This document shows positions 1,234 to 59,060 of a stretch of 64,000 bases of DNA, piece by piece. The translations under genes were made by a program, and so were the position numbers. The stretch is from sequence record NC_019408.1, one strand, 5' to 3'. The notes beneath the pieces were generated by a model. It saw only the letters and a list, made by a program, of their open reading frames with translations. It ran no database searches and was not told where the DNA came from. Numbering within the stretch: the first letter of the stretch is position 1; every line of letters starts with the position of its first letter.

Positions 1234-1257
1234 GTCACGGACTGTAGGTTTCATGAC
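1234..1257. promoter_or_regulatory. GTCAC-N14-ATGAC operator-like palindrome
   Basis: GTCACGGACTGTAGGTTTCATGAC; same geometry as the sites at 32127 and 38047. Confidence 0.5.
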
Positions 1258-1297
1258 AAGGTGGATTATTCCACAACGAAATCAAAGGCTTATCGCC

Positions 1298-1546
1298 ATG
1301 TCGATCCGCACCTTCTTCCACGACCTCGCCGTCCGTTTCGTCGTTTTGGGGTGGATTTTTGCCCAAAAACCCCAGAAATGGGCTCCAAAAGGGCATAATT
1401 TTCAGCCCATCCCGCCGGCCCAGGTCGAGCGGCAGGACCTCCGGGGGCGCGTGCTTCTCCTGAGGAGCTTCGGCGTCCTCGCCGCCGCATGCACAACCAT
1501 GGGCCTGTGTCAATACCTGCTCTGGCGCCGCGCGCCCATGTCATAG
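1298..1546 (+). CDS. Small membrane protein
   Basis: Two hydrophobic segments. Confidence 0.55.
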   Translation: MSIRTFFHDLAVRFVVLGWIFAQKPQKWAPKGHNFQPIPPAQVERQDLRGRVLLLRSFGVLAAACTTMGLCQYLLWRRAPMS

Positions 1547-1593
1547 ACCATCGCTTTCGTGACAGCTTCACGATCCCGTTACCGGACAACCCC

Positions 1594-1692
1594 ATGCCCC
1601 ACCTCGGTTTCTGGCTCTCCGCCGCCTGCATCGCCCTGGCCTGGGCGATCTGGGCGCTACGGCGGCTGATCGCCCCACCACCGCCCGCCTGA
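1594..1692 (+). CDS. Short hydrophobic peptide
   Basis: MPHLGFWLSAACIALAWAIWALRRL: one transmembrane helix. Confidence 0.4.
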   Translation: MPHLGFWLSAACIALAWAIWALRRLIAPPPPA

Positions 1693-1737
1693 CCCCGGCC
1701 GCGCGCGCCCGCGCCGCCGGTATCGCCCGGCCAAAGC

Positions 1738-1955
1738 GTCATATATGAGCCCTTAACCCCTCTAAGGTCGCATATATGAGACCTTACGGCCCTCTTGACG
1801 CCCTCGTGTTCCTCTGAACGCGGGGGCGTTTTGACGTCGGCGCATTTCCAACTCAACGCGCGGCCGTTTTGACGTCCGAGCGTTTTGACGCGAGCGCATT
1901 TTCGATTCGACGGGCGAGCGTTTTGACGTCCGACCGTTTTTCAACTTGACGTCGT
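1738..1955. repeat. CATATATGAG x2 and CGTTTTGACG x4 repeat cluster
   Basis: Direct repeats read from the sequence in a stretch with no convincing ORF. Confidence 0.75.
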
Positions 1956-1974
1956 TTCATTTACCAAGAGCGCC

Positions 1975-2165
1975 TTAAGGTTAACCGCCGAGCCTGGGAA
2001 GGGTTAAGGCCCGTTAACCATGTTTGTTAACCCTCAGGCCGTTAACCTATCACTCGTTAAGGTTAACGCGCCCGCCTCATTAACCCTTAGCGTGTTAAGG
2101 TTAACGCCCCGGCCCAGGCCGTTAAGGTTAACAAACATGGTTAACGGGCCAGACCGGCGTTAACC
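1975..2165. repeat. TTAA/GTTAAC-dense array with a perfect 25-bp inverted repeat
   Basis: 15 TTAA in about 190 bp; GGCCCGTTAACCATGTTTGTTAACC (2008-2032) is the reverse complement of 2126-2150. Confidence 0.88.
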
Positions 2166-2607
2166 CTAACGGCCGGCGCCCAGCCGCGCCCAGGCGCTCG
2201 CCGGCGAGCCCAGGCCCTACCGGGTATGACCTGCCGGCCATACCCGCCAGAGTGCGCCTCACGCGTCCGCGTCGGGCGACGCCGCCGCCCCGTAGTCGTG
2301 ATCATTCCAGAGTATGCCCAGAATTTCGTCAGGCCCGAACGACGGGAGAAGGGTTTGCAGGGCGTCGTATGTCTCGCGGAAGGCGCTCGCGTCGTCGTCC
2401 TGCATCCAGACCGACTCCTTGCCGGTCTTGTCGCGGAACGTGTACGCCGCGCCGTTCCCGTAGCTGTCGAGGGCGAAGCGTTCGCCCTCCGATATCCGAA
2501 GCGGTCCTGAGTACATGGGGCGTTCTCCAAGGGCGCGGGATGCGCCCGACCCGTGCAATCTGACAGCCAATTCTTAACAAAAGGTTACCGTGAGATTTTT
2601 CTTGCCG

Positions 2608-2640
2608 TTTACTTTTTGTTAAGAATTGGGGTCTAGTGTC
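2608..2640 (+). promoter_or_regulatory. CtrA-box early promoter (TTTA-N7-TTAA)
   Basis: Near-consensus CtrA site followed by a CTAG -10-like element. Confidence 0.7.
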
Positions 2641-2689
2641 CCTCTTGTCGGGGCCACCCCCGGCGCTCTTTGACATTGTGAGGCAACCC

Positions 2690-2878
2690 ATGATTCCCCA
2701 AGAAATCCTGAATCCGCGCGAGCACTGGACTCCCGTCGCCTCGCGCGAGGAAGCCGACAAGATCGCCGCGCGCTGCACCGAAGGCGACCCCGTCGGCCGC
2801 TACTATGTCGAGTCCAAGGGCGCCGGCTACGCTGTCGCCTATGACGACGAGACGGGCCAATTCGTCGCCTACCTCTAA
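2690..2878 (+). CDS. Hypothetical LTR protein
   Basis: Directly downstream of a repeated promoter; GC3-rich codon usage. Confidence 0.7.
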   Translation: MIPQEILNPREHWTPVASREEADKIAARCTEGDPVGRYYVESKGAGYAVAYDDETGQFVAYL

Positions 2879-2933
2879 CCCCGCGCCCCGGCCTCGCGCC
2901 GGGGCGCTCCGCCCCTCTTTCGGAGCCTTCCCC

Positions 2934-3326
2934 ATGCCCAGAAATTCCGGCCTCTTGCGCCTTATGGCCACCCATGCCGCCCCCGTCATCAAGGCTTATC
3001 ACGACGATTTCGCCGTGCATGACGCCAAGGTCATTGACGGACTGGAGGCGGGCGACGTGATCTTGTGGGCGCCCGACCCGTGCGGCTCGACTCTCATCGT
3101 CATGGCCCGCGCCGGGCGCCCTAATCACCGCGCCGCCGAACACTTCGAAGCCGCCCAGAGCGCCCGCAAGCCGCCCGCGTGGTTCGTCGCTTCGGTCTAT
3201 GACAACGGGGAGGCGGGCGGCTGGAATTTCGCCCCCGCCCCGGACGCGCCGGCCATTGTCGCGCGCTTCGCCGAACAAGCCGCCCGCGACCCCGCGCCCG
3301 ACCCGGTGCGCGAGCTACACCTTTAA
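2934..3326 (+). CDS. Hypothetical LTR protein
   Basis: GGAG RBS; phage-like codon usage. Confidence 0.7.
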   Translation: MPRNSGLLRLMATHAAPVIKAYHDDFAVHDAKVIDGLEAGDVILWAPDPCGSTLIVMARAGRPNHRAAEHFEAAQSARKPPAWFVASVYDNGEAGGWNFAPAPDAPAIVARFAEQAARDPAPDPVRELHL

Positions 3327-3352
3327 CCTTTTGTTAAGACATGGCCTCTATA
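3323..3352 (+). promoter_or_regulatory. CtrA-box early promoter
   Basis: Perfect TTAA-CCTTTTG-TTAA followed by CTCTATA. Confidence 0.8.
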
Positions 3353-3387
3353 CCGGGGCCATGTCCAACCCCTGGAGGCCCTGCCCC

Positions 3388-3927
3388 ATGTCCGCTATCG
3401 AAACCGCCAACCTCTCGCGCGGCCGTGTTCTCACGGTCGAAATCGACGACTGCGCCCAAGAGCCCTACGCGGGCGACAAGGGCGTGCGAATCGTCGTCCT
3501 GCATCGCCATTGGACGAACCCCGCCGCCGGCCTGCTGGACTCGGTCGCGGACGTTCAAGCCTTCGAGGCGGAGAACGCCGCGCCCGACTCCGAATGGGCG
3601 ATCTTTGAGCTATGGGTGATGGACCATAGCGGCCGGACCTTCAAGGCCGGCGCGCTGGGCGCCGGAAACCCGTTCGGCGCCGGACCCTACGCCCAATGGG
3701 ATAGCGGCCGGGTCGGAGTCATCGCCCTGGCGCGCGCCGAGTGGCCCGCCGCCGACCTCAAGACCGCCCAAGGCGTCGCCGACACCTACGGCGCATGGGC
3801 CGAAGGCGAGGTTTACCAATTCGTCATTTCGAACCGCCGGGGCGACGTGCTCGACTCGTGCGGCGGGTTCTACAGCGTCGCCGAAGCCCTGGCCGCCGGC
3901 CGCGACGCCGCCAAGGTGAAAGCGTGA
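3388..3927 (+). CDS. Hypothetical LTR protein
   Basis: GGAGG RBS; 179 aa. Confidence 0.75.
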   Translation: MSAIETANLSRGRVLTVEIDDCAQEPYAGDKGVRIVVLHRHWTNPAAGLLDSVADVQAFEAENAAPDSEWAIFELWVMDHSGRTFKAGALGAGNPFGAGPYAQWDSGRVGVIALARAEWPAADLKTAQGVADTYGAWAEGEVYQFVISNRRGDVLDSCGGFYSVAEALAAGRDAAKVKA

Positions 3928-4118
3928 GAGTCGCCCGCGAAAGCTTCGCCGTGTTCTGGACCCGCCCCGGCTGGCGCGTCCAGTTTCACGCCGACATGAA
4001 ACGGGCGCTGTACCCGACCGCCAAGGCCGCCGCCGACGCCTTCGCCGCCATGTTCCCGGCTGATCAGGTCAAGAGCGTGCGCGACGGCTCCGGCCGCTTC
4101 CTGGCCTTCAAGCGCTAG
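3924..4118 (+). CDS. Hypothetical LTR protein
   Basis: GTGA start/stop overlap with the upstream gene. Confidence 0.6.
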   Translation: MRVARESFAVFWTRPGWRVQFHADMKRALYPTAKAAADAFAAMFPADQVKSVRDGSGRFLAFKR

Positions 4119-4124
4119 ACCAGA

Positions 4125-4152
4125 CGCCCCGGAAAACTTTTCCGGGGCGTTT
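4125..4152 (+). terminator. Intrinsic terminator-like hairpin
   Basis: ACGCCCCGGAAA/TTTCCGGGGCGT stem followed by T residues. Confidence 0.6.
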
Positions 4153-4180
4153 ACTTTTTGTTAAGGAATGGCGTCTAGTG
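4150..4180 (+). promoter_or_regulatory. CtrA-box early promoter (TTTA-N7-TTAA)
   Basis: Near-identical to the 2608 promoter, including GTCTAGTGTCCCTCTTG. Confidence 0.75.
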
Positions 4181-4226
4181 TCCCTCTTGCCGCCGGGCAA
4201 TCCCGCCCGGCCTTGGAGTTCTTCCC

Positions 4227-4745
4227 ATGCCGGAATTTGTCCTAGATACGTCGGGCCAAGTCGCCCCGCCCGCCGCCGCCAAGCTTTGGCCGCACCCCCT
4301 GGCCTGGAATCAGTTGAGCGATTTTGCTCAAGGCTACATCGAGGCCCTGTTTTTCACCGAGTCGTCGCCGGCCTATGACCGCGCCGAATGGTTCGGCGCC
4401 GAGTGTCAAGAGGCCCTGACCGAAGGCACGGCGGACGGCAACATTCCGGGCGATGTCGGGTTTTCCGACCTCGCGCCCGACACCCTCAACCGCATCTTGA
4501 ACGACTGCGCCAACTTCAAGCGCGAGCACGCCGACACCCTGGCCAAGGCCTATGACCACGGCGGCGCGGCGGGCGACTATGACGAAACCCAAGCCGGCCG
4601 CGATTACTGGTACACCCGCAACGGCCATGGCGTCGGGTTTTGGGATCGCGGACTCGGCGAGATCGGCGAGGCCCTGAGCAAGGCCGCCCGCTACAGCGAG
4701 CAAAACGCCTCTTTCGAAGAGGACGGAAAAGTCTACCTGTTTTAA
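4227..4745 (+). CDS. Hypothetical LTR protein
   Basis: 172 aa; GRDYWYTRNGHGVGFWDRG motif typical of a phage hypothetical family. Confidence 0.8.
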   Translation: MPEFVLDTSGQVAPPAAAKLWPHPLAWNQLSDFAQGYIEALFFTESSPAYDRAEWFGAECQEALTEGTADGNIPGDVGFSDLAPDTLNRILNDCANFKREHADTLAKAYDHGGAAGDYDETQAGRDYWYTRNGHGVGFWDRGLGEIGEALSKAARYSEQNASFEEDGKVYLF

Positions 4746-4771
4746 CCTTTTGTTAAGACTTGGCCTCTAGG
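4742..4771 (+). promoter_or_regulatory. CtrA-box early promoter
   Basis: Perfect TTAA-N7-TTAA followed by CTCTAG. Confidence 0.8.
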
Positions 4772-4837
4772 GTCGAGTTGTCCCGGCGCCGGGGCTGGAA
4801 ACCCCGGCGCGTCCATTCCGTGAAAGGAATCCATACC

Positions 4838-5584
4838 GTGTCTTTTGGTCAATTCTCCGCCGACGCCCGCGCCCCGCTGTCGAAAGCCGCCATGCTGGAC
4901 GCCCTGCCCGCCGCCCGCCGCGACACTCTGGTCAAGGCCAGCAAGCCGGCGCGAAACACCCTCGATTACACGACGTCGGACGGCGTGCGCCGCGTGCGCC
5001 TGCATGACACCGACGTTCTGACCTTCCATGTCAACGGCGCCGTCGAGATCAACACGGGCGGCTGGAATACCCTGACCACGCGCGACCGCATCAACGCCTT
5101 CGCCCCGCCTCACGTGCGCGTCTACAGCGACAAGGGCCGCGCCATGGTCCGCGCCATGCCGGCCGGTAGCGAGGCCGTCACGTGGTCCAGCCCCGCCGCG
5201 TCCAAGCCGTTCGCCAAGCGCGCCACCGTCCACCCGGACGGCCGAATCGAAGTGGACGCCACCGTCAAGGAACTGGAGGCGATTCCTGCCCTCATCCGCC
5301 GCTATCTGGAGGCCTTCAAGGCCGGATTCCCGTTCAACTCGTCGGGCGACCCCTGGATGACGCCCGGCGCCCTCGTCGCCCCTGAAACGGCCCTGGATTG
5401 GCTGGGCGCCGACAGCGGCAAGCCGTACCTGTTCGACTCGATCCTGTTTCACGCCCATGTTGCGGCCGGCCTGACCGAAGAGGGCGCGGCCTATTACATG
5501 CGCGACGCCGCCCGGCGCGGGATCGACAAATTCAACCTTGGCCGCATCCGGCGCTATCTCAAGCGTTGCCTTCGCGAAGCCTAG
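4838..5584 (+). CDS. Hypothetical LTR protein
   Basis: AAGGAA RBS, GTG start; INTGGWNTLTTRDRINAF motif. Confidence 0.75.
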   Translation: MSFGQFSADARAPLSKAAMLDALPAARRDTLVKASKPARNTLDYTTSDGVRRVRLHDTDVLTFHVNGAVEINTGGWNTLTTRDRINAFAPPHVRVYSDKGRAMVRAMPAGSEAVTWSSPAASKPFAKRATVHPDGRIEVDATVKELEAIPALIRRYLEAFKAGFPFNSSGDPWMTPGALVAPETALDWLGADSGKPYLFDSILFHAHVAAGLTEEGAAYYMRDAARRGIDKFNLGRIRRYLKRCLREA

Positions 5585-5593
5585 GACCCTCCG

Positions 5594-5625
5594 GCCGCGC
5601 CTCCCCTGGCGCGGCCTTTCTTTTT
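5594..5625 (+). terminator. Intrinsic terminator
   Basis: GGCCGCGC/GCGCGGCC stem followed by TTTCTTTTT. Confidence 0.75.
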
Positions 5626-5636
5626 CCGTGTACGCG

Positions 5637-5667
5637 TTAACCTGTTGTTAAGACTTTATCCGCTAGT
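5637..5667 (+). promoter_or_regulatory. CtrA-box early promoter
   Basis: Perfect TTAA-CCTGTTG-TTAA followed by GCTAGT. Confidence 0.8.
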
Positions 5668-5714
5668 GTCCCTTTGCCGGCGCACTTCCGCGCCCTCACC
5701 TGGAGATTTTCCCC

Positions 5715-6335
5715 ATGGCCCGCCTGATCAAAGCCAAGACCGCCGCCGAACAAGCCGAAGCCCTCGCCAGCCTGCGCAAGATGATCAAGCCGGGCGACAC
5801 GGTTTATCCCGTGCTCCGCCACGTCTCGACCTCCGGCATGTTGCGGGTCATTGACCTGATTATCCCGGTCACCGTCACCCAAACCGACACCTTGCCGGCC
5901 GATGCGCGCGGCTTCAAGATCGGCGTTCAAGCCTATGCGACCCCGCCGGAGCGCAACGCCCCCCGCGCCTTCTCGACCGGAACCGTAACGGGTTTCGACG
6001 CCGACACCGTGACCATTGCCTATCAGGCCACCGCCGACGGCCGGGGCGACGCGGAGTCGGTGACGTGGCCCCGTGGTCAGGTCAAGTTCTACCGCAAGAG
6101 CACGCGCCCCGGCGTCCGCTCGATCGGCTGGCTTGCCGCGAAGGCCATGGGCGACACCTTCGACGCCGACCGCCAAGGAATCAAGGTCGGCGGGTGCGGT
6201 ATGGATATGGGCTTTCACCTCGTTTACAGCCTGGGCCGCACCCTGTGGCCGAACGGGACGAAAAAGCCCCATGGCTCGCGCAATGGCGAGCCGGACCGTG
6301 ACGGCGGTTATGCGCTGAAACATTCCTGGCTTTAA
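5715..6335 (+). CDS. Hypothetical LTR protein
   Basis: GGAG RBS; RHVSTSGMLRVI and GCGMDMGFHLVY motifs typical of a phage hypothetical family. Confidence 0.8.
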   Translation: MARLIKAKTAAEQAEALASLRKMIKPGDTVYPVLRHVSTSGMLRVIDLIIPVTVTQTDTLPADARGFKIGVQAYATPPERNAPRAFSTGTVTGFDADTVTIAYQATADGRGDAESVTWPRGQVKFYRKSTRPGVRSIGWLAAKAMGDTFDADRQGIKVGGCGMDMGFHLVYSLGRTLWPNGTKKPHGSRNGEPDRDGGYALKHSWL

Positions 6336-6362
6336 CTTTTTGTTAAGAGTTTAGCCGCTAAT
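6332..6362 (+). promoter_or_regulatory. CtrA-box early promoter
   Basis: Perfect TTAA-N7-TTAA followed by GCTAAT. Confidence 0.8.
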
Positions 6363-6412
6363 GTCTCCTTGCGGCCGGGCAATCCCGCCCGGCCGCACTC
6401 GGAACCAAGCCC

Positions 6413-6685
6413 ATGACCCGCGCTCAAGCCCTCGCTGAAATGAACGCCCTCCCCGGTATCATCGCCTCTTTCGAGCGCGAGACGGGCGAATATCGCGTCA
6501 CCCTGCGCTTTGGCCCCCTGCCGGGCGGCCGGGGCGCTCAAGAGTGGATGCACAAGCGCCGCGAAGCCGTCGCCAGCTACAGCGACGACAAGGCCGACGC
6601 CCTGGCCACCGCCCGCGACATGTCGGCCCGCTGGGAAGCCATGACGCCCGCGCAACGTGATCACCTGTACCGCCACCCCGCGTAA
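6413..6685 (+). CDS. Hypothetical LTR protein
   Basis: ORF directly downstream of a promoter. Confidence 0.7.
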   Translation: MTRAQALAEMNALPGIIASFERETGEYRVTLRFGPLPGGRGAQEWMHKRREAVASYSDDKADALATARDMSARWEAMTPAQRDHLYRHPA

Positions 6686-6712
6686 CCCTTCGTTAAGACC
6701 TCGCCGCCTAGA
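6682..6712 (+). promoter_or_regulatory. CtrA-box early promoter (GTAA-N7-TTAA)
   Basis: Same architecture; CCTAGA -10-like element. Confidence 0.7.
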
Positions 6713-6749
6713 GTGGCGGGGTCATCAACCCCCGCAAGGATCGCCCGAC

Positions 6750-7028
6750 ATGCGCAAGCCCCTCACCCAAGAGCAAAAGGCCCGCCGCCGCGCCCAACGC
6801 CGCGCCGCCCGCCTCAACTGGAGCGACGAACGCCGCGCGGCCGAATACGCCCGCCAATCGCGCTTTTTCCTGATGATCGCCGAACGCGCCCAAGCGGCGG
6901 GCGACGCCAAGGAAGCCGCCCGCCTCGCCACCGTCGCCCAACGCAAGGTCACTAACTGGCGCATGGCGCAAGCCTGCGCTCGCATCAACGCCCTTTCCGT
7001 CCACGCCTGGGCCGCTGTCGCGGCCTAA
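6750..7028 (+). CDS. Basic Arg/Ala-rich LTR protein
   Basis: AAGGA RBS. Confidence 0.7.
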   Translation: MRKPLTQEQKARRRAQRRAARLNWSDERRAAEYARQSRFFLMIAERAQAAGDAKEAARLATVAQRKVTNWRMAQACARINALSVHAWAAVAA

Positions 7029-7061
7029 GCCGCCGCGCCCGAACCGAAGGAACCCCGCCCC

Positions 7062-7385
7062 ATGCCCCCGATGACTCACCCTCACGCCCTGGCCTTGATC
7101 GCGCTCGCGGAAAAGGTCCTGCCCCTGACCCGGCTGGACCCGCTGAATCAGCGCGCCGCCGCTGTCGACCTGATCGGCGATCTTTACAGCCTCGCCGACT
7201 CCATCGACGCCACCGCCGGCCATCTGGTCGCCGCTGTCAACGGCGCCTTGCGTGACGGCTGCGAGGGCTACGCGCCCAAGAGCCGCGCCGCCGCCGCTGT
7301 CGCCACCGTCCGCGCCGACGAACTGCGCTCCGCCCTGGAAGCGTACACCGAAGCCGCCGCCCTGGCCCTGCCGAAGGTCGCCTAA
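7062..7385 (+). CDS. Hypothetical LTR protein
   Basis: AAGGA RBS; codon usage. Confidence 0.7.
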   Translation: MPPMTHPHALALIALAEKVLPLTRLDPLNQRAAAVDLIGDLYSLADSIDATAGHLVAAVNGALRDGCEGYAPKSRAAAAVATVRADELRSALEAYTEAAALALPKVA

Positions 7386-7386
7386 C

Positions 7387-7959
7387 ATGACCGTCACCCG
7401 CTACCGCCTCCCCGACATGACCGCTTACGGTAAGGGGCTTTCCGAAACGCTTTATGCGGCGTTCGAAGCCCTGAAAAATCCGCAAGCGCCCTACAAGCCG
7501 GGCGAACGCGCCCGCCTCATCGAGTCGCTGATCACCTACAGCGCCGGCGCCCATACGCCCAAGGCCCCCGACTCGGTCCTCGCAACCCTGCTTTGGGTTG
7601 TCGAAATGGCGCAAGAGCGCGCCACCGACTCCGACTTCAACACGGCGCGCGAGGCGCTGGACGAACACGCCGCCTTAGGGTTCGTCACCGATTGGCTAGA
7701 AGCGCACGGCTTGGACGTGGCCCGCATCCGGGGCGCGGAACTCAGCGCCGAAGCCCGCGCCTCTCTGGTTGAGGAAGCCGACGCCGAACAAGCCAAGCTG
7801 GACGCCCTGGAAGCCGCCCAGACGGGCGAAACGCCCGCCGACGTGATCACCGAAGCCCTCGCCCCGTTCCTGGGCTCCACGGTCGCGGAAAACCACTCTG
7901 ACGACGTGCTGGCGGCGCTGGACGCGGCCGGCTTCACCATCACCCGAAAGGACGCCTGA
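7387..7959 (+). CDS. Hypothetical LTR protein
   Basis: Tightly coupled to its neighbours. Confidence 0.7.
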   Translation: MTVTRYRLPDMTAYGKGLSETLYAAFEALKNPQAPYKPGERARLIESLITYSAGAHTPKAPDSVLATLLWVVEMAQERATDSDFNTAREALDEHAALGFVTDWLEAHGLDVARIRGAELSAEARASLVEEADAEQAKLDALEAAQTGETPADVITEALAPFLGSTVAENHSDDVLAALDAAGFTITRKDA

Positions 7960-7961
7960 GC

Positions 7962-8681
7962 ATGACCGCCCCCGCCCTGACCCGCGCCGCCGCCCTGGAA
8001 GCCCTGGAAATCGCCCGCGCCAACCTCGCCGCCGGCCCCGCCCTGGCCAAGGCCGCCGACGGCGTGACGGATGTGTGTCACTTCGCCCTGACCCGCGCCG
8101 CCATGCTCAAGGCCGCCGACATGATCGCCGCCGCCGCCCCGGCGCTGGACCTGGGCGCCGTCTCGACGGCCGATCTAATCGCCGAACTCTACCGCCGCCC
8201 CGTCGCGCTTTGCGTGTTCGAAGCCGCCGACGTGCTCACCGAAGCGCCCGGCGCTTTCGACGACGCCGACGACGCGGGCCAATGGCTGGCGAGCAAGTCC
8301 AGCTATATCGGCGACGCGATGAGCGGCGCCGGCTGGGACTCGGTGCGCTATCACCTGACCGCCGACGGCCGGGCGACCGATGACGACGAGGAAGGCGAGG
8401 AAGCCGACGACGAGGGCGACGCCCTCCCCGTCGCCGTGACCTTGGAGCAAGGCGACGCCGTCCCCGTGGTCGGGCGCTTCGCCACCGTGTCGGAGGCTGA
8501 AACCTTCCTGGCGTCGCCGATCCGTGATCAAGCCGCCCTCACCGCCGGGCGCTACGGTATCGACGCGCCGCACGGCGTGGCCAGCGACGACGACGCCGTG
8601 ACCCTGGCGCGCCGCCTGGGCTGGGCTGGCGTGGCGAACGCGGCCGAAGCCTTGCGCTTCCTGGCCAAAATCGAGCCTTAA
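7962..8681 (+). CDS. Hypothetical LTR protein with an acidic linker
   Basis: 239 aa; AAGGA RBS. Confidence 0.75.
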   Translation: MTAPALTRAAALEALEIARANLAAGPALAKAADGVTDVCHFALTRAAMLKAADMIAAAAPALDLGAVSTADLIAELYRRPVALCVFEAADVLTEAPGAFDDADDAGQWLASKSSYIGDAMSGAGWDSVRYHLTADGRATDDDEEGEEADDEGDALPVAVTLEQGDAVPVVGRFATVSEAETFLASPIRDQAALTAGRYGIDAPHGVASDDDAVTLARRLGWAGVANAAEALRFLAKIEP

Positions 8682-8691
8682 GCCCGGCTAA

Positions 8692-8715
8692 GTCATCAAA
8701 CCTATCGTCTATGAC
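8692..8715. promoter_or_regulatory. GTCAT-N14-ATGAC operator-like palindrome
   Basis: Same geometry; more TCACG/CGTGAC half-sites lie at 8718-8782. Confidence 0.45.
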
Positions 8716-8872
8716 ATGTCACGGGCTGAATACTTGGCTCGTGACGACTTCCCCTAGTAAAGCTCACGCCTGTTTTCGTGACATAGCGCAAGGAATTGAA
8801 ATCGTTGGAAAAACTCCTAGAGGGTCACAAAGTTCTGGTTTGGCTGCTGCTTCTGGCTTGCCTCTGGCGCTT

Positions 8873-8903
8873 TTAACCCTTTGTTAAGACTTTACCCGCT
8901 AGG
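8873..8903 (+). promoter_or_regulatory. CtrA-box early promoter
   Basis: Perfect TTAA-CCCTTTG-TTAA followed by GCTAGG. Confidence 0.8.
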
Positions 8904-8961
8904 GTGACTTTGCGGCCGGGCAATCCCGCCCCGCCGCCCTTCCTTCTCTGGAGCCGCTACC

Positions 8962-9402
8962 ATGCAAACCGCTTCCGTGATCCTCCCCGCCCAAACCCTG
9001 GCCGGCGCCGACCTTGGCCCCGTGCTGATGGTCTTCGCCCTGGAACTGTCGCAGCACTTCGGCGACGTCACCCAAGCCCCGACCGTCGAGCGCTGGACCG
9101 ATGAGGCCACGGGCGCCGAGTTCGTCGCCGACTGTGTGGCGTTCACGGTGTCGGCGGACTGGACCGCCAAGGGCGGGCGCATGGCGCGCCGCCTGGAGAA
9201 CATGGCCGCCCGCTACGCCGCCCCGTGCGAGGCCCCGGCCCTGACCGTCCAGCACGCCGACGGCTCAACCGTCTACGTCGCCGCCCTGGAGGCGCTGGCG
9301 CGCCCTGCCCCGGTGCAAGGCCCCTCGCGCATCGCAGACCCGGCTTTCCTCCCTCGCCAGCGTGAGGACAAGGCCGCCCGCTTCGAACGCCTGACCGCCT
9401 AG
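8962..9402 (+). CDS. Hypothetical LTR protein
   Basis: GGAG RBS. Confidence 0.7.
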   Translation: MQTASVILPAQTLAGADLGPVLMVFALELSQHFGDVTQAPTVERWTDEATGAEFVADCVAFTVSADWTAKGGRMARRLENMAARYAAPCEAPALTVQHADGSTVYVAALEALARPAPVQGPSRIADPAFLPRQREDKAARFERLTA

Positions 9403-9425
9403 GCCTTGGCCTAGCCTCTCCCCTA

Positions 9426-9458
9426 GCGCACCGCCTCGCAAGCGGTGCGCTTTTCTTT
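9426..9458 (+). terminator. Intrinsic terminator
   Basis: AGCGCACCGC/GCGGTGCGCT stem followed by TTTCTTT. Confidence 0.75.
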
Positions 9459-9463
9459 GCGTA

Positions 9464-9494
9464 TTAACTTGTTGTTAAGAGTTTAGCTGATAGT
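9464..9494 (+). promoter_or_regulatory. CtrA-box early promoter
   Basis: Perfect TTAA-CTTGTTG-TTAA followed by GATAGT. Confidence 0.8.
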
Positions 9495-9546
9495 GTCCCC
9501 TTGTTGGCGACGCATCCCGCGCCGCTCCTCTCTTGGATCGCTCCAC

Positions 9547-9939
9547 ATGGCCCGCCCTTCTGACCTGCTCAACGTCAACGCCGCCCGCGTCCTGGCTTGC
9601 CTGGAAGCCCTGGCCGGCGTCGTTAAGACCGCCCCGGAAACCGATCGCGCCGCCTTCTCCTACCTGCTGGACGCGGCCGAATTCGTCGCTTCCTGGCGCC
9701 GCAACCATACGGAAACCGATCGCCGTCGCGCCTACGGTGCAGCGTGCGCGGCGCAAGCCCTGGCCCTGACCAATGCCTATCAGCCCGCGACCATGCAAGG
9801 CGGGGCGGTGCGCCGCGCTCTGGGCGCCTATGCCGCCGCCCTTAAGCTGCTGCTGGACGGTGAGCCGGTGCAAGCCGTGCGCGCGGCCGAAGGCGCCGCC
9901 CAGAGCGTGCGCGGGCGCTTCGCTAACACCCGCATCTAG
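9547..9939 (+). CDS. Hypothetical Ala-rich LTR protein
   Basis: ORF between two promoters. Confidence 0.7.
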   Translation: MARPSDLLNVNAARVLACLEALAGVVKTAPETDRAAFSYLLDAAEFVASWRRNHTETDRRRAYGAACAAQALALTNAYQPATMQGGAVRRALGAYAAALKLLLDGEPVQAVRAAEGAAQSVRGRFANTRI

Positions 9940-9970
9940 TAACCTTCTGTTAAGACCCCCTGGCCTATAG
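9939..9970 (+). promoter_or_regulatory. CtrA-box early promoter (GTAA-N7-TTAA)
   Basis: Followed by CCTATAGT. Confidence 0.7.
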
Positions 9971-9996
9971 TCGGGGGGTCGCAAGGAGACACCCAC

Positions 9997-10188
9997 ATGA
10001 CCCGCCCCGGCCCCGCCTCGCTCCTCTCGCCCGCCGCCACCTTCTCGGCGCATAACCTGACCCTTCCGGGCGCTCGCCCTATGCCCCTGCCCAAGGCGCA
10101 AGGCCTGACCCTTCGCCAGTGCGTCGCCCTGGGCGCTGGCCTTGGCGCTCTGGCCTATGTCGCGTTGCGCGCGCTGGGCGTGCTCTGA
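9997..10188 (+). CDS. Small membrane protein
   Basis: AAGGAG RBS; C-terminal transmembrane helix. Confidence 0.7.
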   Translation: MTRPGPASLLSPAATFSAHNLTLPGARPMPLPKAQGLTLRQCVALGAGLGALAYVALRALGVL

Positions 10189-10645
10189 CCTGACCCCCGG
10201 CGCCCCCGGTCGCCTCGCGGTAGGGCTGTCCCATATTGAGACGGCCCTACCGGGGTAGTGTTTCTTTTTGGGACGAGGGACCCAAAGGCCCCCTACGTTA
10301 ACCATTTTTGGCGGCGCCCCCCGGCGCCTCAGGATAGCGTTGAACTTTTCGGTTGACATAATCAGACCCTCAGGCGAAGAAGGGCGCGTTCAGGCCGAGC
10401 GGCGCCCCCGACTAACCGCCGGTCCAGGCCCCATCCCTTCTCCCCACGTCCCAGTCCACGGGATGTAGGGACCGGGGGTGGGGCCTTTTTATTTTCCGGT
10501 CGGGGACCCGCCGGGAAGGCGTTTTCAAAACCCAAACGCTAAATCGACCCTCAAAAAATTTCCAAAATCATAAACCCGGTTGACAGAACCAGACTGGCTG
10601 CTAAGTGTTGCTCCACGACACGCCAACGCAAGCCCAGGAGGCTCC

Positions 10646-31991: not shown

Positions 31992-32015
31992 GTCACGAAA
32001 CCCTGGTTTTGTGAG
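31992..32015. promoter_or_regulatory. GTCAC-N14-GTGAG operator-like palindrome
   Basis: GTCACGAAACCCTGGTTTTGTGAG. Confidence 0.7.
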
Positions 32016-32126: not shown

Positions 32127-32150
32127 GTCACGAAACCCTGGTTTCGTGAC
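32127..32150. promoter_or_regulatory. GTCAC-N14-GTGAC operator-like palindrome
   Basis: GTCACGAAACC-CT-GGTTTCGTGAC, perfect 11-bp arms. Confidence 0.8.
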
Positions 32151-32249: not shown

Positions 32250-33185
32250 ATGGCTGCTGTGACCCTGCTGCAAGCGTCCGAAATGGCGCTCGGCAACGAC
32301 GAAGTCAAGCGCGCCGCGATCATCGAGCTTTTCGCGACGCCCGACATCCTGCGCGTGATCCCGTTCCTGGACATCCAGGGCGGCGCGTACACCTACCTGC
32401 AAGAAGGCCAGCTCTCGGGCGTCGCCTTCCGGGGCATCAACGAGTCCTACGACACGTCGACCGGCGTGATCAACCCGCAAGTCGAGCGCCTGCGCATCGT
32501 CGGCGGTGACCTGGACGTCGACAAGGCCCTGCTGAAGACCCACGGCGCCAACGTCCGCTCGCAGCAGGAGCGCATGAAGGTCAAGGCTCTGAGCCTGTAC
32601 CTCGCCGGCAAGATCGTCAACGGCGACTCGGAAAACGACCCGCGTGAGTTCGACGGTCTGCGCAAGCGCATCACCGGCTCGCAACTCTTCCCGGCCGGCA
32701 ACACCTCGGGCGGCGACGCCCTGTCGCTGGCCGTCCTGGACGAAGCCATCGACGCGGTCGACGGTGCGACGCACCTGATCATGTCGAAGCGCATGCGTAA
32801 CCTGCTCGCGCAGTCGGCCAACAACCCCAACGTCACCGGCTACGTGACCTGGGACAAGGACGAGTTCGGCATGCGCGTCATGCGCTACGCCGACCTGCCG
32901 ATCCTGGTGACCGACTACGACGACAAGAACCAGCAGGTCATCGACTTCAACGAAGCCAACCCCGGCGGTGGCGCCGCTGTCGGCACCTCGATCTACGTCG
33001 TCAACATCGGCGACGAAGGCGTGGTCGGCCTCCAGAACGGCATCATGGAGATCGAAGACCTCGGCGAGATCGACGCCAAGCCGGTTCTGCGTACCCGCGT
33101 GGAATGGCTGGTTTCGCTGGCCGTCCTGAGCGGCCGTGCTGCCGCTCGCGTCTGGGGCATCAAGAAGGCCGCTGTCACCCGCTAA
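32250..33185 (+). CDS. Major capsid protein (HK97 fold)
   Basis: AAGGAG RBS; FRGINE..., GGDLDVDK, PREFDGL and final R.RVEW motifs; position. Confidence 0.92.
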   Translation: MAAVTLLQASEMALGNDEVKRAAIIELFATPDILRVIPFLDIQGGAYTYLQEGQLSGVAFRGINESYDTSTGVINPQVERLRIVGGDLDVDKALLKTHGANVRSQQERMKVKALSLYLAGKIVNGDSENDPREFDGLRKRITGSQLFPAGNTSGGDALSLAVLDEAIDAVDGATHLIMSKRMRNLLAQSANNPNVTGYVTWDKDEFGMRVMRYADLPILVTDYDDKNQQVIDFNEANPGGGAAVGTSIYVVNIGDEGVVGLQNGIMEIEDLGEIDAKPVLRTRVEWLVSLAVLSGRAAARVWGIKKAAVTR

Positions 33186-33743: not shown

Positions 33744-33777
33744 AAACCCCGGACCTCGCGGTCCGGGGTTTTTCTTT
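33744..33777 (+). terminator. Intrinsic terminator
   Basis: AAACCCCGGACC-TCGC-GGTCCGGGGTTT followed by TTCTTT. Confidence 0.85.
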
Positions 33778-38039: not shown

Positions 38040-38046
38040 TCCCTAG

Positions 38047-38070
38047 GTCACGAAACCAGGGTTTTGTGAC
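38047..38070. promoter_or_regulatory. GTCAC-N14-GTGAC operator-like palindrome
   Basis: CTAG-GTCACGAAACCAGGGTTTTGTGAC-CTAG. Confidence 0.8.
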
Positions 38071-38110
38071 CTAGCCCTCCCGTCCATCCTCCCGTCAAAG
38101 GTCTCCCGCG

Positions 38111-48698: not shown

Positions 48699-49006
48699 AC
48701 CTCGTGGTGAGGTGAGAACGCCCTCCTCATGCACCGCTTCGGCGGTAAAGTAGGCTCCAGCCGAAGAGATGCGGGACCAGGGGACCCCGCCACCACGAAC
48801 GAAGTGCGCCCCAGGTACGCCTCTGACCGAGAAAGCCCGCTGGCCGTGGGTGAAGTGTATGGTCAAGCGTCTGGGTCCCCGTCCGCCAGGACCGGCGAAG
48901 GCCATATGCGCCGAATTCCTGGACCGGATCGTAGGAGGGGAGCGTTGGCGCCGGCCCAGCAGGGAAGGGTGAAGAGCCCAGCCGGCAATTTTCTTCAACA
49001 ACAAGC

Positions 49007-54256: not shown

Positions 54257-55123
54257 GTGTCCGAGTCTTCCGAATTCAACCCGCTCGACCAATCCCAGTT
54301 CCCTCCTCGCCTCACCAAGGCTGCTGCGCGTCAGGCGCGGCGCCAGGAGCGCAGCCAGAAAAAGGACCCCACGGCGAACAAGCCCAACTACAAGGCGCTC
54401 GAAGCCAAGACTGAACGCCAGAAGCGCTACATCCAGGCGCTGAAGGCCGGCGAGAGCGCCATCGCCATCGGCGGGGCCGGCACGGGGAAGACCTACATCC
54501 CGTCCCGGCTCTTCGCCAAGAAGCTGATCGAAGGCAAGACCGAACGCCTGATCATCGCCCGCGTCACCGCCTCGCGGGCCAAGCACGCCCTGGGCTTCCT
54601 GCCCGGCAAGCTCGAAGCCAAGCTGGCCCCGTGGCTGGTGCCGGTGATCGAGGGCGTCAAGGCGGAAATGAACGCCCAGACCTATACGCAGTTGCAGGAG
54701 GCCGGCAAGATCGAGTTCGCCTCCTTCGAGCACATGCGCGGCCGGACCTTCGGCGAGTGCTGCGTCCTGCTGGACGAGGCCCAGAACGCCGACTACAAGG
54801 ACCTGAAGATGGTCCTGACCCGTTGGGGTGAGAACGCCCAGTACGCGGTCACCGGCGACGTCGACCAGATCGACGTGGACGACTCCGGGCTGGACACGGT
54901 CATCGACATCGTCGAGGCCAACGACATCCCCATCCACGTCATCGAGTTCACCGACGAAGACGTCGTGCGCTCGCCCATGGCCAAGGCCTGGGTCAAGGCC
55001 TTCTCCGCCCACGAGGGCAAGGACGGCCGGCCCCGGCGCTTCCACCGCCCGGCTGTCAGGAATCTTGACGCTTTGCCGGCGTTCATCGATAATGGCCATG
55101 TCACGAAACCCGTGGCATCGTGA
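54257..55123 (+). CDS. phoH: PhoH-family ATPase
   Basis: GGAGTGKT Walker A; LGFLPG.L..KL.PW; MRGRTF; LLDEAQN; LTRWGE; GDVDQID. Confidence 0.93.
   Translation: MSESSEFNPLDQSQFPPRLTKAAARQARRQERSQKKDPTANKPNYKALEAKTERQKRYIQALKAGESAIAIGGAGTGKTYIPSRLFAKKLIEGKTERLIIARVTASRAKHALGFLPGKLEAKLAPWLVPVIEGVKAEMNAQTYTQLQEAGKIEFASFEHMRGRTFGECCVLLDEAQNADYKDLKMVLTRWGENAQYAVTGDVDQIDVDDSGLDTVIDIVEANDIPIHVIEFTDEDVVRSPMAKAWVKAFSAHEGKDGRPRRFHRPAVRNLDALPAFIDNGHVTKPVAS
55055..55093 (+). promoter_or_regulatory. GTCAGGAATC-TTGACG promoter inside the phoH 3' end
   Basis: N17 then GATAAT. Confidence 0.6.
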
Positions 55124-55124
55124 C
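55100..55124. promoter_or_regulatory. GTCAC-N15-GTGAC operator-like palindrome
   Basis: GTCACGAAACCCGTGGCATCGTGAC. Confidence 0.55.
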
Positions 55125-55140: not shown

Positions 55141-55662
55141 ATGGCCTTCACCTTCGTTGTTGAGACCGGCGCCGGCGACCCGGCCGCGAACTCGTACTGC
55201 GACGTGCAGTTCGCGGACGACTACATCTACGCCAACGTCTACTCGAACACCGCCTGGGCCGCCTTGGAGGACGAGGACAAGGAACGCTTCCTGGTCCGCG
55301 CCTCCAAGTACCTGGACCGGACGGTGCAATGGGCGGGGGAGAAGATCGAGGAGGACTCCGGCCTGCGCTGGCCGCGCGCCGGGGTCTATGACGTCGACGG
55401 CTTCCTGATCCCCAGCGACGCCATCCCGCAGCAGTTGATGGAGGCCACCGCCGAAATGGCGGCGGCGCTCCTCAACAACGACTGGACCTCGCCGCAGACC
55501 ACGCGCGGCATGAAGGAAATCCAGGTCGACGTCATCGAACTGAAGTTCGACACCGAGGTCCAGCGCGGCTCGATGCCGGACATCGTCATGCAAATCCTGG
55601 AGGGCCTGGGCGTGGTCAAGACCGGCCAGCGCCCGGCCTTCAAGAAGATCATCCGGCACTAA
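55141..55662 (+). CDS. Head-tail connector/adaptor protein
   Basis: VETGAG..AANSY..V..AD.Y...A..YLD...W.G.......L.WPR.G family motif. Confidence 0.75.
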   Translation: MAFTFVVETGAGDPAANSYCDVQFADDYIYANVYSNTAWAALEDEDKERFLVRASKYLDRTVQWAGEKIEEDSGLRWPRAGVYDVDGFLIPSDAIPQQLMEATAEMAAALLNNDWTSPQTTRGMKEIQVDVIELKFDTEVQRGSMPDIVMQILEGLGVVKTGQRPAFKKIIRH

Positions 55663-56524: not shown

Positions 56525-56595
56525 TCCCCGCGTTCATCATTCTGCCGCGCGTCTATCTCGCGGCGTGGGTTTCGTTCTGGCTCGGGGAGGACTAG

Positions 56596-57051
56596 ATGCT
56601 CGAACACGACATGCTCCGTCAAGTCCTGGAACAGCAGGCGCTCGCCGCCGCCGTCCTGGCCAACCTCGACCTGAAGTTCGACAACTCCCAGTTCGTCCAG
56701 CCGACCGACGGACGCCACTGGGCGGAGTTCTGGCACAAGACCGGCGCGACCAAGGCCTGCGAGGTCGCTGGGCCGAAGGGCTATGAGAAGACCGCTGGGC
56801 TGCTGCAATTCACCCTCAAGGCCCCCGAGGAGGAAGGCAACGGCGCGATCATCCGCGCCGGCGGTCTCGTCAAGCGGGCGCTGAACCGCAAGCAGTTGGT
56901 GATCCCGCCCGACGGCTGGGTCACGCTCGATCCGATCTCGGTCGACATGCACGGCAAGCCGATCGACGGCTTCTTCAACGTCATCGTCTGGGCGACGTTC
57001 GACTTCTACCACCGCGATCCCGACGCGCCCGATCACTGGCTCCGGGGTTGA
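56596..57051 (+). CDS. Putative tail terminator
   Basis: Precedes the tail tube gene; GLLQFTLKAP..EG motif. Confidence 0.65.
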   Translation: MLEHDMLRQVLEQQALAAAVLANLDLKFDNSQFVQPTDGRHWAEFWHKTGATKACEVAGPKGYEKTAGLLQFTLKAPEEEGNGAIIRAGGLVKRALNRKQLVIPPDGWVTLDPISVDMHGKPIDGFFNVIVWATFDFYHRDPDAPDHWLRG

Positions 57052-57075
57052 CGGCGGAGCTTCACGGCTGCTATA

Positions 57076-57114
57076 GTCGTGAATCTTGACATTCCGCGAA
57101 GTCTAGGGTAGGTT
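57076..57114 (+). promoter_or_regulatory. GTCGTGAATC-TTGACA promoter for the tail tube gene
   Basis: N17 then TAGGTT. Confidence 0.78.
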
Positions 57115-57166
57115 CACCACACTTGCGATGCAGGGCCGGGTCGGCGCGCTCGCTACCCTTCCTTTT

Positions 57167-57190
57167 GTCACAAAACCCTGGATTGGTGAC
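57167..57190. promoter_or_regulatory. GTCAC-N14-GTGAC operator-like palindrome
   Basis: GTCACAAAACCCTGGATTGGTGAC, just before the ATG. Confidence 0.7.
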
Positions 57191-57196
57191 CTGCAC

Positions 57197-59029
57197 ATGG
57201 CTGCATCGTTCTTCGCCGACTCCAACCGCGCGCGGATGCGCTACATCAAGGAAAACAACGTCATCTGGGGTGTCACCCCGGCGACGGGCGTTTCCCGCGA
57301 ACTGCGGTACACCGGCTCCACCGTCAACGCCCAGAAGGACACGACCCTCTCGGAAGAAATCCGTGCTGACCGCATGGTGTCCGAGATCGTCGAGGTCGCT
57401 GCGCGCACCACTGGCGAAATCAACGTCGAATTCTCGGCTGGCTCGCACGACGACCTGCTCGAAGCCTTCATGTACGGCGCGTGGACGCGCCCGATGACCT
57501 TCGACTCGGTCCAGGGCGTCTCGCTCGAATGGTCCGACACCGACACCCTGTACGTCAAGGGCAAGGACGTCACCCCCTACTTCTTCGCGGGCCGCCGCGT
57601 CCGCACGCAGGGCTTCATCAACGTCGCGAACAACGGCTACTGGCAGATCGCCACGATCACGTTCAACGCCGGCGCCAACCGCACCGAGATCAACATGTCC
57701 GCGTCGACGGCTGTCGCCGAGCGCGGCACCGCCTACTCGGCGATGTATGACGCCAACGACGTCATCGTCCTGAACAACGTCGCGATCCGCGCGGGCACCT
57801 CGGGCGAAGCTGCGTTCGACTCCAACGGCACCAACGCCTTCGCCGCCGCGATCGCTGCCGGCCAACTGCTGGTCGGTCAGAAGATTTTCGTCGAGGGCCT
57901 GGGCTTCGAGACGGGCACCGTCACCCTGGCTGATCTGCCGGCGGCTGGCGCGCGCGTCAAGATCGCCGACGGCGCCAAGGACGTCACCTTCCAATTCGGC
58001 GGCAGCGCCTCCCAGCCGATCGTCGTCGTGCCCCTGGGCACCGACGAAATCGACACCGCCCAGAACCTCGCTGACGCCATCAACAAGCTGCGCGTCCGCA
58101 AGCAACTGGAAGTGGGGGCCTCGGCCGCTGCCGGCGTCGTGACGCTGCGCAACCTGCTGGTGACGGGCGGCTCGGTCACCGAGACCGTCGCCGACGCCAA
58201 CGTGACCGTCGCCAACTTCTCGGGCGGCAACGCCACGGTGCGCGGCATCTTCACCATCGAGTCGCTGACCGATGACAAGATCGGCGTCAACCCGGCTCCG
58301 ACCACGCTGAACAACTCGACGGCCAAGGTCAACATCAAGGCCTCGACCCTGCGCAACCCGTCCGACCCGGACGTCATCACCGCGCAGTCGTTCACCTTCG
58401 AGACCGGCTTCGAAGACGTCGACCAATACTACCTCGCCGACGGCATGCGGATCGGTACGATCGGCCTGAACATCGCGGCCAACTCGATCCTGACGGGCTC
58501 CTACGGCCTGCAAGGTCGCGCCTCGACCCGCCAGAACGAGACCAAGCTGGGCGCTTCGCCCTACGTTGCGCTCCAGACGACCGCGACCCCGGTGGCCAAC
58601 GCCACGGTCAACGTCGGCAAGATCGCGATGAACGGCGAGGAACTCTCGACGGCCGTCCAGTCGATCGCCATCAACGGCACGAACAACCTGCGCGACCAGA
58701 TGGCCGTGGGCTACAAGTTCCCCGCCGGCATCGGCGCGGGCCGGATGGAAATCTCGGGCTCGCTGGTCGCCTACTTCGCTGATGGCAACCTGTGGGACAA
58801 GTTCATCAACCACGAGACCGTCTCGGTGAGCTTCCCGCTGACCGACGTGCTGGGCAACCACTACGAGTTCACGATCCCGGCGGCGAACTTCTCGACCGAC
58901 ACCGTGAACCCGGCCGGCGGCAACCAGGACATCATGGAGAACCTGGAGTACACCGCCAAGCGCGACCCGGTCACCGACTGCCAGTTCCAGATCGACCGCT
59001 ACTCCTCGATCTTCGCGAACACGAACTAA
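57197..59029 (+). CDS. Major tail tube protein with an inserted domain
   Basis: SEEIRADRMVS...GEINVEFS; GRMEISGSLVAYFAD..LWDKFIN; GN.YEFTIPA. Confidence 0.88.
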   Translation: MAASFFADSNRARMRYIKENNVIWGVTPATGVSRELRYTGSTVNAQKDTTLSEEIRADRMVSEIVEVAARTTGEINVEFSAGSHDDLLEAFMYGAWTRPMTFDSVQGVSLEWSDTDTLYVKGKDVTPYFFAGRRVRTQGFINVANNGYWQIATITFNAGANRTEINMSASTAVAERGTAYSAMYDANDVIVLNNVAIRAGTSGEAAFDSNGTNAFAAAIAAGQLLVGQKIFVEGLGFETGTVTLADLPAAGARVKIADGAKDVTFQFGGSASQPIVVVPLGTDEIDTAQNLADAINKLRVRKQLEVGASAAAGVVTLRNLLVTGGSVTETVADANVTVANFSGGNATVRGIFTIESLTDDKIGVNPAPTTLNNSTAKVNIKASTLRNPSDPDVITAQSFTFETGFEDVDQYYLADGMRIGTIGLNIAANSILTGSYGLQGRASTRQNETKLGASPYVALQTTATPVANATVNVGKIAMNGEELSTAVQSIAINGTNNLRDQMAVGYKFPAGIGAGRMEISGSLVAYFADGNLWDKFINHETVSVSFPLTDVLGNHYEFTIPAANFSTDTVNPAGGNQDIMENLEYTAKRDPVTDCQFQIDRYSSIFANTN

Positions 59030-59036
59030 GGGCTAT

Positions 59037-59060
59037 GTCACGATTCCCCCGGATCGTGAC
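59037..59060. promoter_or_regulatory. GTCAC-N14-GTGAC operator-like palindrome
   Basis: GTCACGATTCCCCCGGATCGTGAC. Confidence 0.7.

Follow-up and report, generated by a model that had tools for sequence, protein, structure and literature searches.

The first 64,000 bases of the genome of Caulobacter phage CcrRogue (JX100814.1; 223,720 base pairs, bp), a phiCbK relative in the genus Poindextervirus, contain a small family of palindromes in which the arms GTCAC and GTGAC enclose a spacer that is mostly 14 nucleotides (nt) long (GTCAC-N14-GTGAC). This stretch is referred to as the window, and its coordinates are those of the record. With a probability of about 0.5, these palindromes act as sense-strand messenger RNA (mRNA) hairpins at cistron borders, which would define or protect transcript ends and help to set the stoichiometry of the virion proteins. 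The inner 5 bp change in a compensatory manner and the spacer may be 14, 15, 16 or 18 nt long, which fits a folded single strand rather than a rigid operator for a dimeric protein. A preliminary description had placed a DNA operator first and had offered RNA hairpins or processing sites that set protein stoichiometry as the alternative; on the basis of covariation and variable spacing, this alternative is the better-supported reading of the two.

The window takes in the left terminal repeat (1-10321), a set of small genes, the head genes, and the transfer RNA (tRNA) and tail modules, and nearly all of its genes lie on the + strand. Exact matches to GTCAC-N13-16-GTGAC occur five times in the window, compared with 0.25 expected, and none of 100 shuffles reached five; four of these copies (32127, 38047, 57167 and 59037) have an N14 spacer and one (55100) has N15, and the copy at 31992 carries a single mismatch in its last base (right arm GTGAG). 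The relaxed pattern GTCAY-N14-RTGAC yielded seven matches against 0.18 expected. Among orthologous or paralogous sites, the palindromes measure 24-28 bases, with spacers of N14, N15, N16 or N18. No further N14 or N15 copy was found in the remaining CcrRogue genome (149 kb outside the window), and a covariance model built from 30 instances and run over 213 kb identified one weak extra copy at record positions 93388-93411, which is positioned between two replication genes on their sense strand. Every copy is located at a gene border, between genes of the same strand and on the sense strand, the main sites being in late operons; the copies are few and almost confined to the structural block. Single GTSAC words in intergenic DNA showed no enrichment apart from the palindromes themselves. 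A CRISPR-like array was ruled out, the spacing being irregular and as large as kilobases. The main sites, designated A to F, and the additional copies in the window are as follows.

Site A: 31992..32015, + strand; starts at the first base past the TAA stop of the scaffold gene, ends in GTGAG and contains one G.U pair.
Site B: 32127..32150, + strand; a perfect palindrome of 24 nt that opens the series of hairpins in the capsid-gene leader, 99 nt 5' of the ATG.
Site C: core 38047-38070, extended 38043..38074, + strand; CTAG/CTAG flanks lengthen the core to a 14-bp stem.
Site D: hairpin 55100-55124 (25 nt), with its promoter 55065..55124, + strand; overlaps the stop codon of PhoH and is separated from gp087 by 16 nt.
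Site E: 57167..57190, + strand; fits the pattern, with the outer 5 bp alone pairing; 6 nt separate its end from the tail-tube ATG.
Site F: core 59037-59060, extended 59030..59065, + strand; carries a GGGCU/AGCCC extension.
8718 copy: 8718..8745, + strand; an N18 copy (GTCAC-N18-GTGAC) whose stem has 12 bp, situated within the terminal repeat at 36 nt 3' of the gp016 stop.
Decayed copy: 1234..1257, + strand; 8 nt after the gp001 stop, with a family-like right half and a diverged left inner half.
Decayed copy: 1540..1563, + strand; overlaps the gp002 stop, folds at -2.2 kcal/mol and is found at the same place in phiCbK.
Decayed copy: 8692..8715, + strand; GTCAT-N14-ATGAC, 10 nt after the gp016 stop and beside the 8718 copy, folding at -1.4 kcal/mol (z about 0).

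The placement of the copies at the junctions of the scaffold, capsid, giant lectin-like and tail-tube genes, as given in the preliminary description, agrees with the GenBank annotation. Its list of copies was upheld for the five exact matches and for the one-mismatch copy at 31992; the copies at 1234 and 8692 barely fold, that at 57167 forms no stable hairpin, and those at 8718 and 1540 had been missed.

Covariation was counted over 30 instances in one alignment and compared with 500 shuffles and with slid controls. The fraction of cells that are paired was 91.3% versus 82.7% in the shuffles, the number of cells changed on both sides was 18 versus 5.5, and the covariation score was 0.218 versus 0.088, none of these values being reached in any of the 500 shuffles; all slid controls scored lower. 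The outer five pairs are invariant, save for transitions after which a G.U pair still forms on the + strand, and pairs 6, 8, 9 and 10 co-vary, the tenth being C-G, G-C, A-U or U-A according to lineage. In both the palindromes and the downstream hairpins of the capsid-gene leader described below, base pairs are therefore preserved by compensatory change, as in structured RNAs. At the level of the alignment, this comparison shows selection for complementarity of the two arms despite turnover of the inner sequence.

The phages phiCbK, Karma, Swift, CcrBL10 and BL57 carry all six main sites at the junctions where CcrRogue has them, site A having an orthologue in each of these phages. Lack of positional conservation had been named in the preliminary description as grounds for abandoning the family; the opposite was found, namely strong positional conservation. 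Site B is also kept in six uncultured relatives (L009, L010, L019, L020, L024 and L026), the capsid proteins of which are 77-86% identical to that of CcrRogue; in these metagenomic sequences, GTCAC/GTGAC is retained around inner stems that include GAAAG/CTTTC, CATAC/GTGTG, GAAAA/TTTTC and GAAAT/ATTTC, among others. In a 225-kb metagenomic phage, site F occurs 8 nt after the stop of the tube gene, with a different inner stem, the tube protein being 59% identical. The inner stem of site C is GAAACC/GGTTTT in CcrRogue and GATCCC/GGATC in BL10, Karma, phiCbK and Swift; a 26-nt form (N16) with one added C-G pair occurs at sites A, B and C of BL57; and a G-C to C-G swap at the sixth pair distinguishes the 8718 copies of CcrRogue and phiCbK.

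When the cores of sites A, B, C, D and F and of the 8718 copy were folded as RNA, z-scores of -2.5 to -7.3 were obtained, and the stable stem-loops range from -9 to -23 kcal/mol over cores and extended stems. Site A folds at -9.1 kcal/mol on the + strand versus -5.1 kcal/mol on the - strand, and at -17.0 kcal/mol with its flanking GCGC/GCGC extension; the corresponding values are -13.1 kcal/mol for site B (z -4.8), -11.0 kcal/mol for the core and about -19.8 to -20.5 kcal/mol for the extended stem of site C, -9.7 kcal/mol for site D (+ strand), -13.1 kcal/mol for the core and about -21.9 to -22.9 kcal/mol for the extended stem of site F, and -16.3 kcal/mol for the 8718 copy (z -7.3). Site E, at -3.4 kcal/mol (z 0.2), forms no stable hairpin; the ribosome-binding site of the tail-tube gene is likely to be the 3' arm of site E, GGTGAC. 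Its left arm reads GTCCC in BL57, and the site is absent from the 225-kb metagenomic relative. The decayed copy at 1234 folds at -3.2 kcal/mol (z about 0), and its phiCbK orthologue is an exact GTCAC-N14-GTGAC that folds at -7.5 kcal/mol.

The positions of the sites at cistron borders are fixed. The extended stem of site C begins 3 nt, and its core 7 nt, after the gp077 stop, and these elements lie 36 nt and 40 nt, respectively, upstream of the giant lectin-like gene (2805 residues). The extended stem of site F begins at the first base after the tail-tube stop (59027-59029), with the core 7 nt after it, and the copies at 8718, 8692, 1540 and 1234 are each located at a stop codon or at most 36 nt 3' of one. 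At site D, the first G of the hairpin is found 6 nt past the end of the promoter TTGACG-17-GATAAT (55065-55093), and promoter and hairpin are kept together in six phages of the phiCbK group. The first gene after site D, gp087 (55141-55662), matches Pfam DnaT_2 (E = 1e-43) and encodes a putative DnaT-like single-stranded DNA-binding protein. Sites A and B are near-perfect copies of one palindrome, so that they can also pair with each other; the minimum-energy fold in five phages is an A:B duplex of 22-25 bp, interrupted by a small internal loop and closing a spacer of around 110 nt; it surpasses the two local hairpins by 9-12 kcal/mol.

The capsid gene has a leader, conserved across the subfamily, that contains three hairpins, of which site B comes first. 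The other two are:

Leader hairpin 2: 32159-32188, + strand; downstream of site B.
Leader hairpin 3: 32195-32211, + strand; downstream of site B.

Leader hairpins 2 and 3 are kept from the phiCbK-like phages to Bertelyvirus, the Brevundimonas phage Bajun and metagenomic relatives, even where the GTCAC motif is lacking, and they themselves covary (pair 111-121: AU in 7, GC in 6 and GU in 4 sequences); they matched no family in Rfam. They are followed by a conserved ribosome-binding site, AAGGAG, and by the ATG at 32250. The conservation and covariation of these hairpins argue that the entire spacer between the scaffold and capsid genes acts as RNA. In the phiCbK record, the capsid gene begins at a GTG further upstream (L017 2081), and the open reading frame then crosses the conserved leader hairpins; the start of the gene is most likely the ATG at 32250, as in the CcrRogue record. 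The bases preceding site B (CACAAGTCAAGTCAC) closely resemble the -10/start region of the promoter at 33806, but no properly spaced -35 element was found directly upstream of site B, and a promoter at this position is a possibility only. In more distant relatives, whose capsid proteins are about 57-60% identical to that of CcrRogue, another conserved structured leader was observed.

In the database searches, no Rfam model reached the gathering or E-value thresholds in the region of sites A and B (31900-32300); the single sub-threshold match there, to a mammalian long non-coding RNA model (E = 0.029), is on the opposite strand at 32047-32126 and overlaps neither palindrome. Over the whole window, the gathering score was reached by tRNAs and a skipping-rope RNA alone, the latter (RF02924; 45.8 bits, gathering score 36.7) being located at 48702-48798 within the tRNA array. 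A scan of IMG/VR with 14 specified bases returned at least 119 stretches, mostly chance matches or true terminators of unrelated phages; its one useful hit was site F of the 225-kb metagenomic phage. The commonest form of the palindrome, with the inner stem GAAAC/GTTTC, was found in no Caulobacter genome among 185,579 species genomes (596 Gb), the only two matches being in metagenome-assembled genomes from other groups (Cloacimonadota and Chthoniobacteraceae). This result is consistent with the earlier remark that the palindrome matches no recognised host motif, and, for the form scanned, a host element or host repeats of the repetitive extragenic palindromic (REP) type were rejected. No description of the palindrome was found in the papers on the phiCbK genome, on CtrA and phages, or on the XRE factors and TgrL.

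The GTCAC palindrome is absent from Bajun and from the Bertelyvirus phages CcrBL9 and CcrSC. The capsid protein of Bajun is 91% identical to that of CcrRogue, and the DNA of the capsid region is 78.5% identical; unrelated G+C-rich hairpins occupy the same junctions. At the position of site B, the flanks are kept (GCACAAGTCAA 5' and AGAGATTCC 3' of the hairpin) and the hairpin itself is replaced; at that of site D, the same promoter-hairpin geometry is found with a different hairpin, though the encoded C-terminal residues of PhoH differ. The PhoH-like ATPase was considered as a partner of the hairpins and dismissed: Bajun has PhoH without GTCAC hairpins, so that the two do not correlate.

Bajun also retains a promoter motif, GTCG(T/C)GAATCTTGAC, which occurs eight times in 37.5 kb. 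In CcrRogue, the extended form of this motif, GTCGTGAATCTTGAC(A), is found about 25 times, always on the coding strand (20108-57090 in the window, together with the remainder of the genome), and it precedes genes of the structural and replication blocks alike. A likely -10 element (NANNNT) lies 17 nt downstream of it, and the block upstream of the -35 element suggests contact with an activator or a UP-like contact. The hexamer TCGTGA, which the preliminary description had placed in a late promoter motif, is indeed part of GTCGTGAATCTTGAC, but the motif is not specific to late genes. Since Bajun keeps the motif without the GTCAC palindrome, the two are evolutionarily uncoupled, and the resemblance of the palindrome to the promoter TCGTGA is probably coincidental.

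If the palindromes function as mRNA hairpins, the copies that follow stop codons (A, C, F and 8718) would block 3'-to-5' exonucleases or mark processing points, and the upstream message (scaffold, head genes, tail tube) would outlast what follows them. The copies in leaders (B and D) would provide the downstream message with a protected, hairpin-capped 5' end; from its predicted start, the transcript of the site D promoter would begin with the hairpin. Intercistronic and 5'-terminal stem-loops stabilise segments of bacterial mRNAs, and a hairpin at the 5' end of a transcript guards it from 5'-end-dependent decay. In the phiCbK group, sites A and B could alternatively pair into the 22-25-bp duplex. 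Jointly, the hairpins would tune the molar ratios of the virion proteins within long late operons. Many other strong hairpins without U-tracts were present in the late intergenic gaps surveyed, and the GTCAC family therefore appears to be a recognisable subset of a general design. The invariance of the GUCAC/GUGAC stem base and the joint evolution of the copies within a genome suggest a sequence-specific partner, either a protein or a nuclease. In a more specific version, for which the prospects are slender, a dedicated phage or host protein reads this stem base on late mRNAs and co-ordinates their stability or translation; such an RNA regulon would co-ordinate the capsid, fibre and tail-tube messages, for example through feedback from assembly, its copies would co-evolve with the protein, and Bajun-like lineages with unrelated hairpins would be without that protein.

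Several considerations weigh against the mRNA-hairpin interpretation. The strand test gave 12 G.U versus 6 A.C cells on the + strand (p = 0.12), which is only suggestive, and several of the G.U cells are non-independent, one variant apparently having been copied between sites. Site D folds better on the - strand (-12.5 versus -9.7 kcal/mol). Palindromes have no intrinsic orientation, and both the RNA level of action and its mechanism are deduced from sequence. Passive protection of ends needs no shared sequence and so leaves the GUCAC/GUGAC base unaccounted for. The decayed copies (1234, 1540, 8692 and E) carry the outer arms at N14 with no inner pairing, which fits the recognition of two half-sites, although this argument is limited by the fact that the pattern search could find only copies with intact outer arms. 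Finally, terminating ribosomes would open hairpins that are positioned 0-8 nt past a stop codon.

An operator function, in which a dimeric phage or host regulator binds the double-stranded GTCAC-N14-GTGAC, possibly the same one that reads the promoter TCGTGA, and controls late transcription, appears unlikely. The outer 5-bp inverted repeats are invariant, as conserved half-sites would be, N14 dominates and is the spacing at which the decayed copies keep their outer arms, site D spans +1 to +25 of its promoter, and upstream of the CtrA-dependent gp017 promoter there is a cluster of four GTCAC-like elements (8692-8847); the phage also encodes helix-turn-helix proteins, including gp025 and gp036, but nothing ties these two to the sites. 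However, the inner positions vary yet stay complementary, which protein contacts do not account for, and the two halves do not change independently, as is evident from the excess of double-sided cells (18 versus 5.5, 0/500). Spacings of 14, 15, 16 and 18 would rotate the half-sites, whereas an operator would hold them at a fixed distance; five of the seven good sites lie away from any promoter, only D overlapping a promoter start; and the conserved core is GTGAC, not TCGTGA (sites 57167 and L020). In addition, the one published matrix, obtained by chromatin immunoprecipitation sequencing for the phiCbK XRE factor TgrL (core roughly CAACC) and the host XRE factors, is unlike the palindrome. Bajun retains the promoter motif alone, and the proposal of a DNA operator that shares one regulator with the promoter is left unsupported. 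The palindromes might instead be non-canonical terminators, attenuators or pause sites that reduce downstream expression after the scaffold, head and tube genes, an explanation that we consider improbable. Sites A, C and F do come after the stops of abundant proteins, and lower amounts are needed of the products of the genes behind them; the extended stems of C and F are very stable, and TransTermHP annotates the orthologue of site C in the CcrSwift record as a predicted terminator; the phiCbK record, in contrast, annotates none of the six sites as such. No U-tract follows the stems, the tails being AAGAGAAT, CTAGCCC, AGCCCCC, ATGCGCC and AAAGACG, and sites B, D and E are located in the leaders of genes that require high expression. 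A terminator scan of the window listed none of the palindromes but identified, between the minor capsid gene and the promoter that directly follows at 33806, a canonical intrinsic terminator (33744-33771) with a 12-bp stem and then TTTTTCTTT; the phage has a textbook terminator where one is required.

Cleavage of the hairpins or of the A:B duplex by RNase III or a phage nuclease, which would separate the cistrons, is quite unlikely. The A:B duplex, as the minimum-energy fold in five phages, has 22-25 bp, the usual size of an RNase III substrate; in BL57, sites A and B are both 2 nt longer, so that the register of the duplex is kept, and the fixed stem base would suit a sequence-specific nuclease. 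The local stems, however, have only 10-15 bp, which is short for RNase III, and about two turns (roughly 20 bp or more) are reached by the A:B pair alone; local hairpins should form first during transcription, and a partner exists for A and B alone, whereas site C grew in BL57 without one. Very unlikely, finally, is the explanation that the palindromic unit is a selfish or relic repeat that was spread by recombination and is now decaying, being either functionless or a recombination site for the exchange of modules. The copies in one genome do evolve together, the T19 variant being shared by sites A and C in CcrRogue and by A and B in BL10, the N16 form by three copies in BL57, and site C being of the GAAACC type in CcrRogue and of the GATCC type in its relatives; decayed copies also exist. 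Against this, orthologous sites persist at 59-86% protein identity while their flanks diverge, the compensatory changes show that pairing is under selection, essential genes would be lost if the copies recombined with one another, and the commonest (GAAAC/GTTTC) form is absent from the Caulobacter genomes scanned.

Other sequence elements were observed in the window and in a relative. The terminal repeat contains six TTAA-N7-TTAA boxes (3323, 4742, 5637, 6332, 8873 and 9464), each near a gene start, which fit the CtrA sites reported for phiCbK-like phages (PMC9437464); the box at 8873 precedes gp017, the orthologue of the gene whose promoter, that of CbK_gp018, was tested (PMC9437464). Within a non-coding stretch of 570 nt (1693-2258), GTTTTGACG is repeated four or five times (1830-1930) and at least ten TTAACC/GGTTAA words are densely arrayed (1975-2165); the stretch may be an origin or a regulatory hub. 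The word AAGTCAA(G) occurs at 31033, 32119, 33739 and 33843, beside hairpins and promoter -10 regions. In the distant relative L037, the capsid protein of which is 57% identical to that of CcrRogue, a GTCACGAA-GGCC-TTTCGTGAC core is found at 1527-1547 in a palindrome of roughly 20 bp between two tRNA genes.

Caulobacter is a model system with phiCbK as its standard phage, and the hairpins at these borders offer concrete places at which the very different output of scaffold, capsid, fibre, tube and chaperone proteins from a late region of roughly 60 kb can be studied in existing RNA-seq data from infections; a stem that is fixed at its base and free in its upper part points to a specific partner. 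For annotation, the palindromes should be labelled neither as operators nor as intrinsic terminators. They share with Rho-independent terminators a G+C-containing stem-loop after a stop codon, and one orthologue has been so annotated (CcrSwift), but they have no U-tract, and the canonical terminator of the same operon (33744-33771) looks quite different. They also resemble the REP hairpins of Escherichia coli malEFG and the puf hairpins of Rhodobacter capsulatus, which are likewise U-tract-less and located right after the most-needed cistron of a polycistronic operon, and for which the proposed effect is differential stability leading to protein stoichiometry; the corresponding role in CcrRogue is proposed from sequence. 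Unlike REP, which is a family spread throughout host genomes, the commonest form of the palindrome was found in two non-Caulobacter metagenome-assembled genomes only, and, unlike both REP and puf, some of the phage copies are positioned in 5' leaders. In this respect they resemble the 5' stabilisers of the E. coli ompA leader and the phage T7 capsid-gene leader, site D being at a predicted +1 and site B heading the capsid leader, but here members of one sequence family serve in leaders and follow stop codons as well. The RNase III sites of phage T7, where cutting leaves protective hairpins, are likewise intercistronic, among the late or early genes of a lytic phage, and the A:B duplex has the right length; the individual hairpins of CcrRogue are much shorter, however, and cleavage here is hypothetical. 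Cluster O mycobacteriophages carry 17-bp dyad repeats near gene borders and a stem-loop after the major tail subunit gene (PMC4351075), and thus share with CcrRogue a prolate-headed siphophage virion, a repeated border palindrome and a stem-loop immediately behind the major tail gene. In Cluster O there are over 30 repeats, spread over both gene blocks and with 7-bp arms that do not vary, a pattern that fits DNA binding (PMC4351075), whereas the CcrRogue copies are few, co-vary in their inner arms and are found almost only in the structural block.

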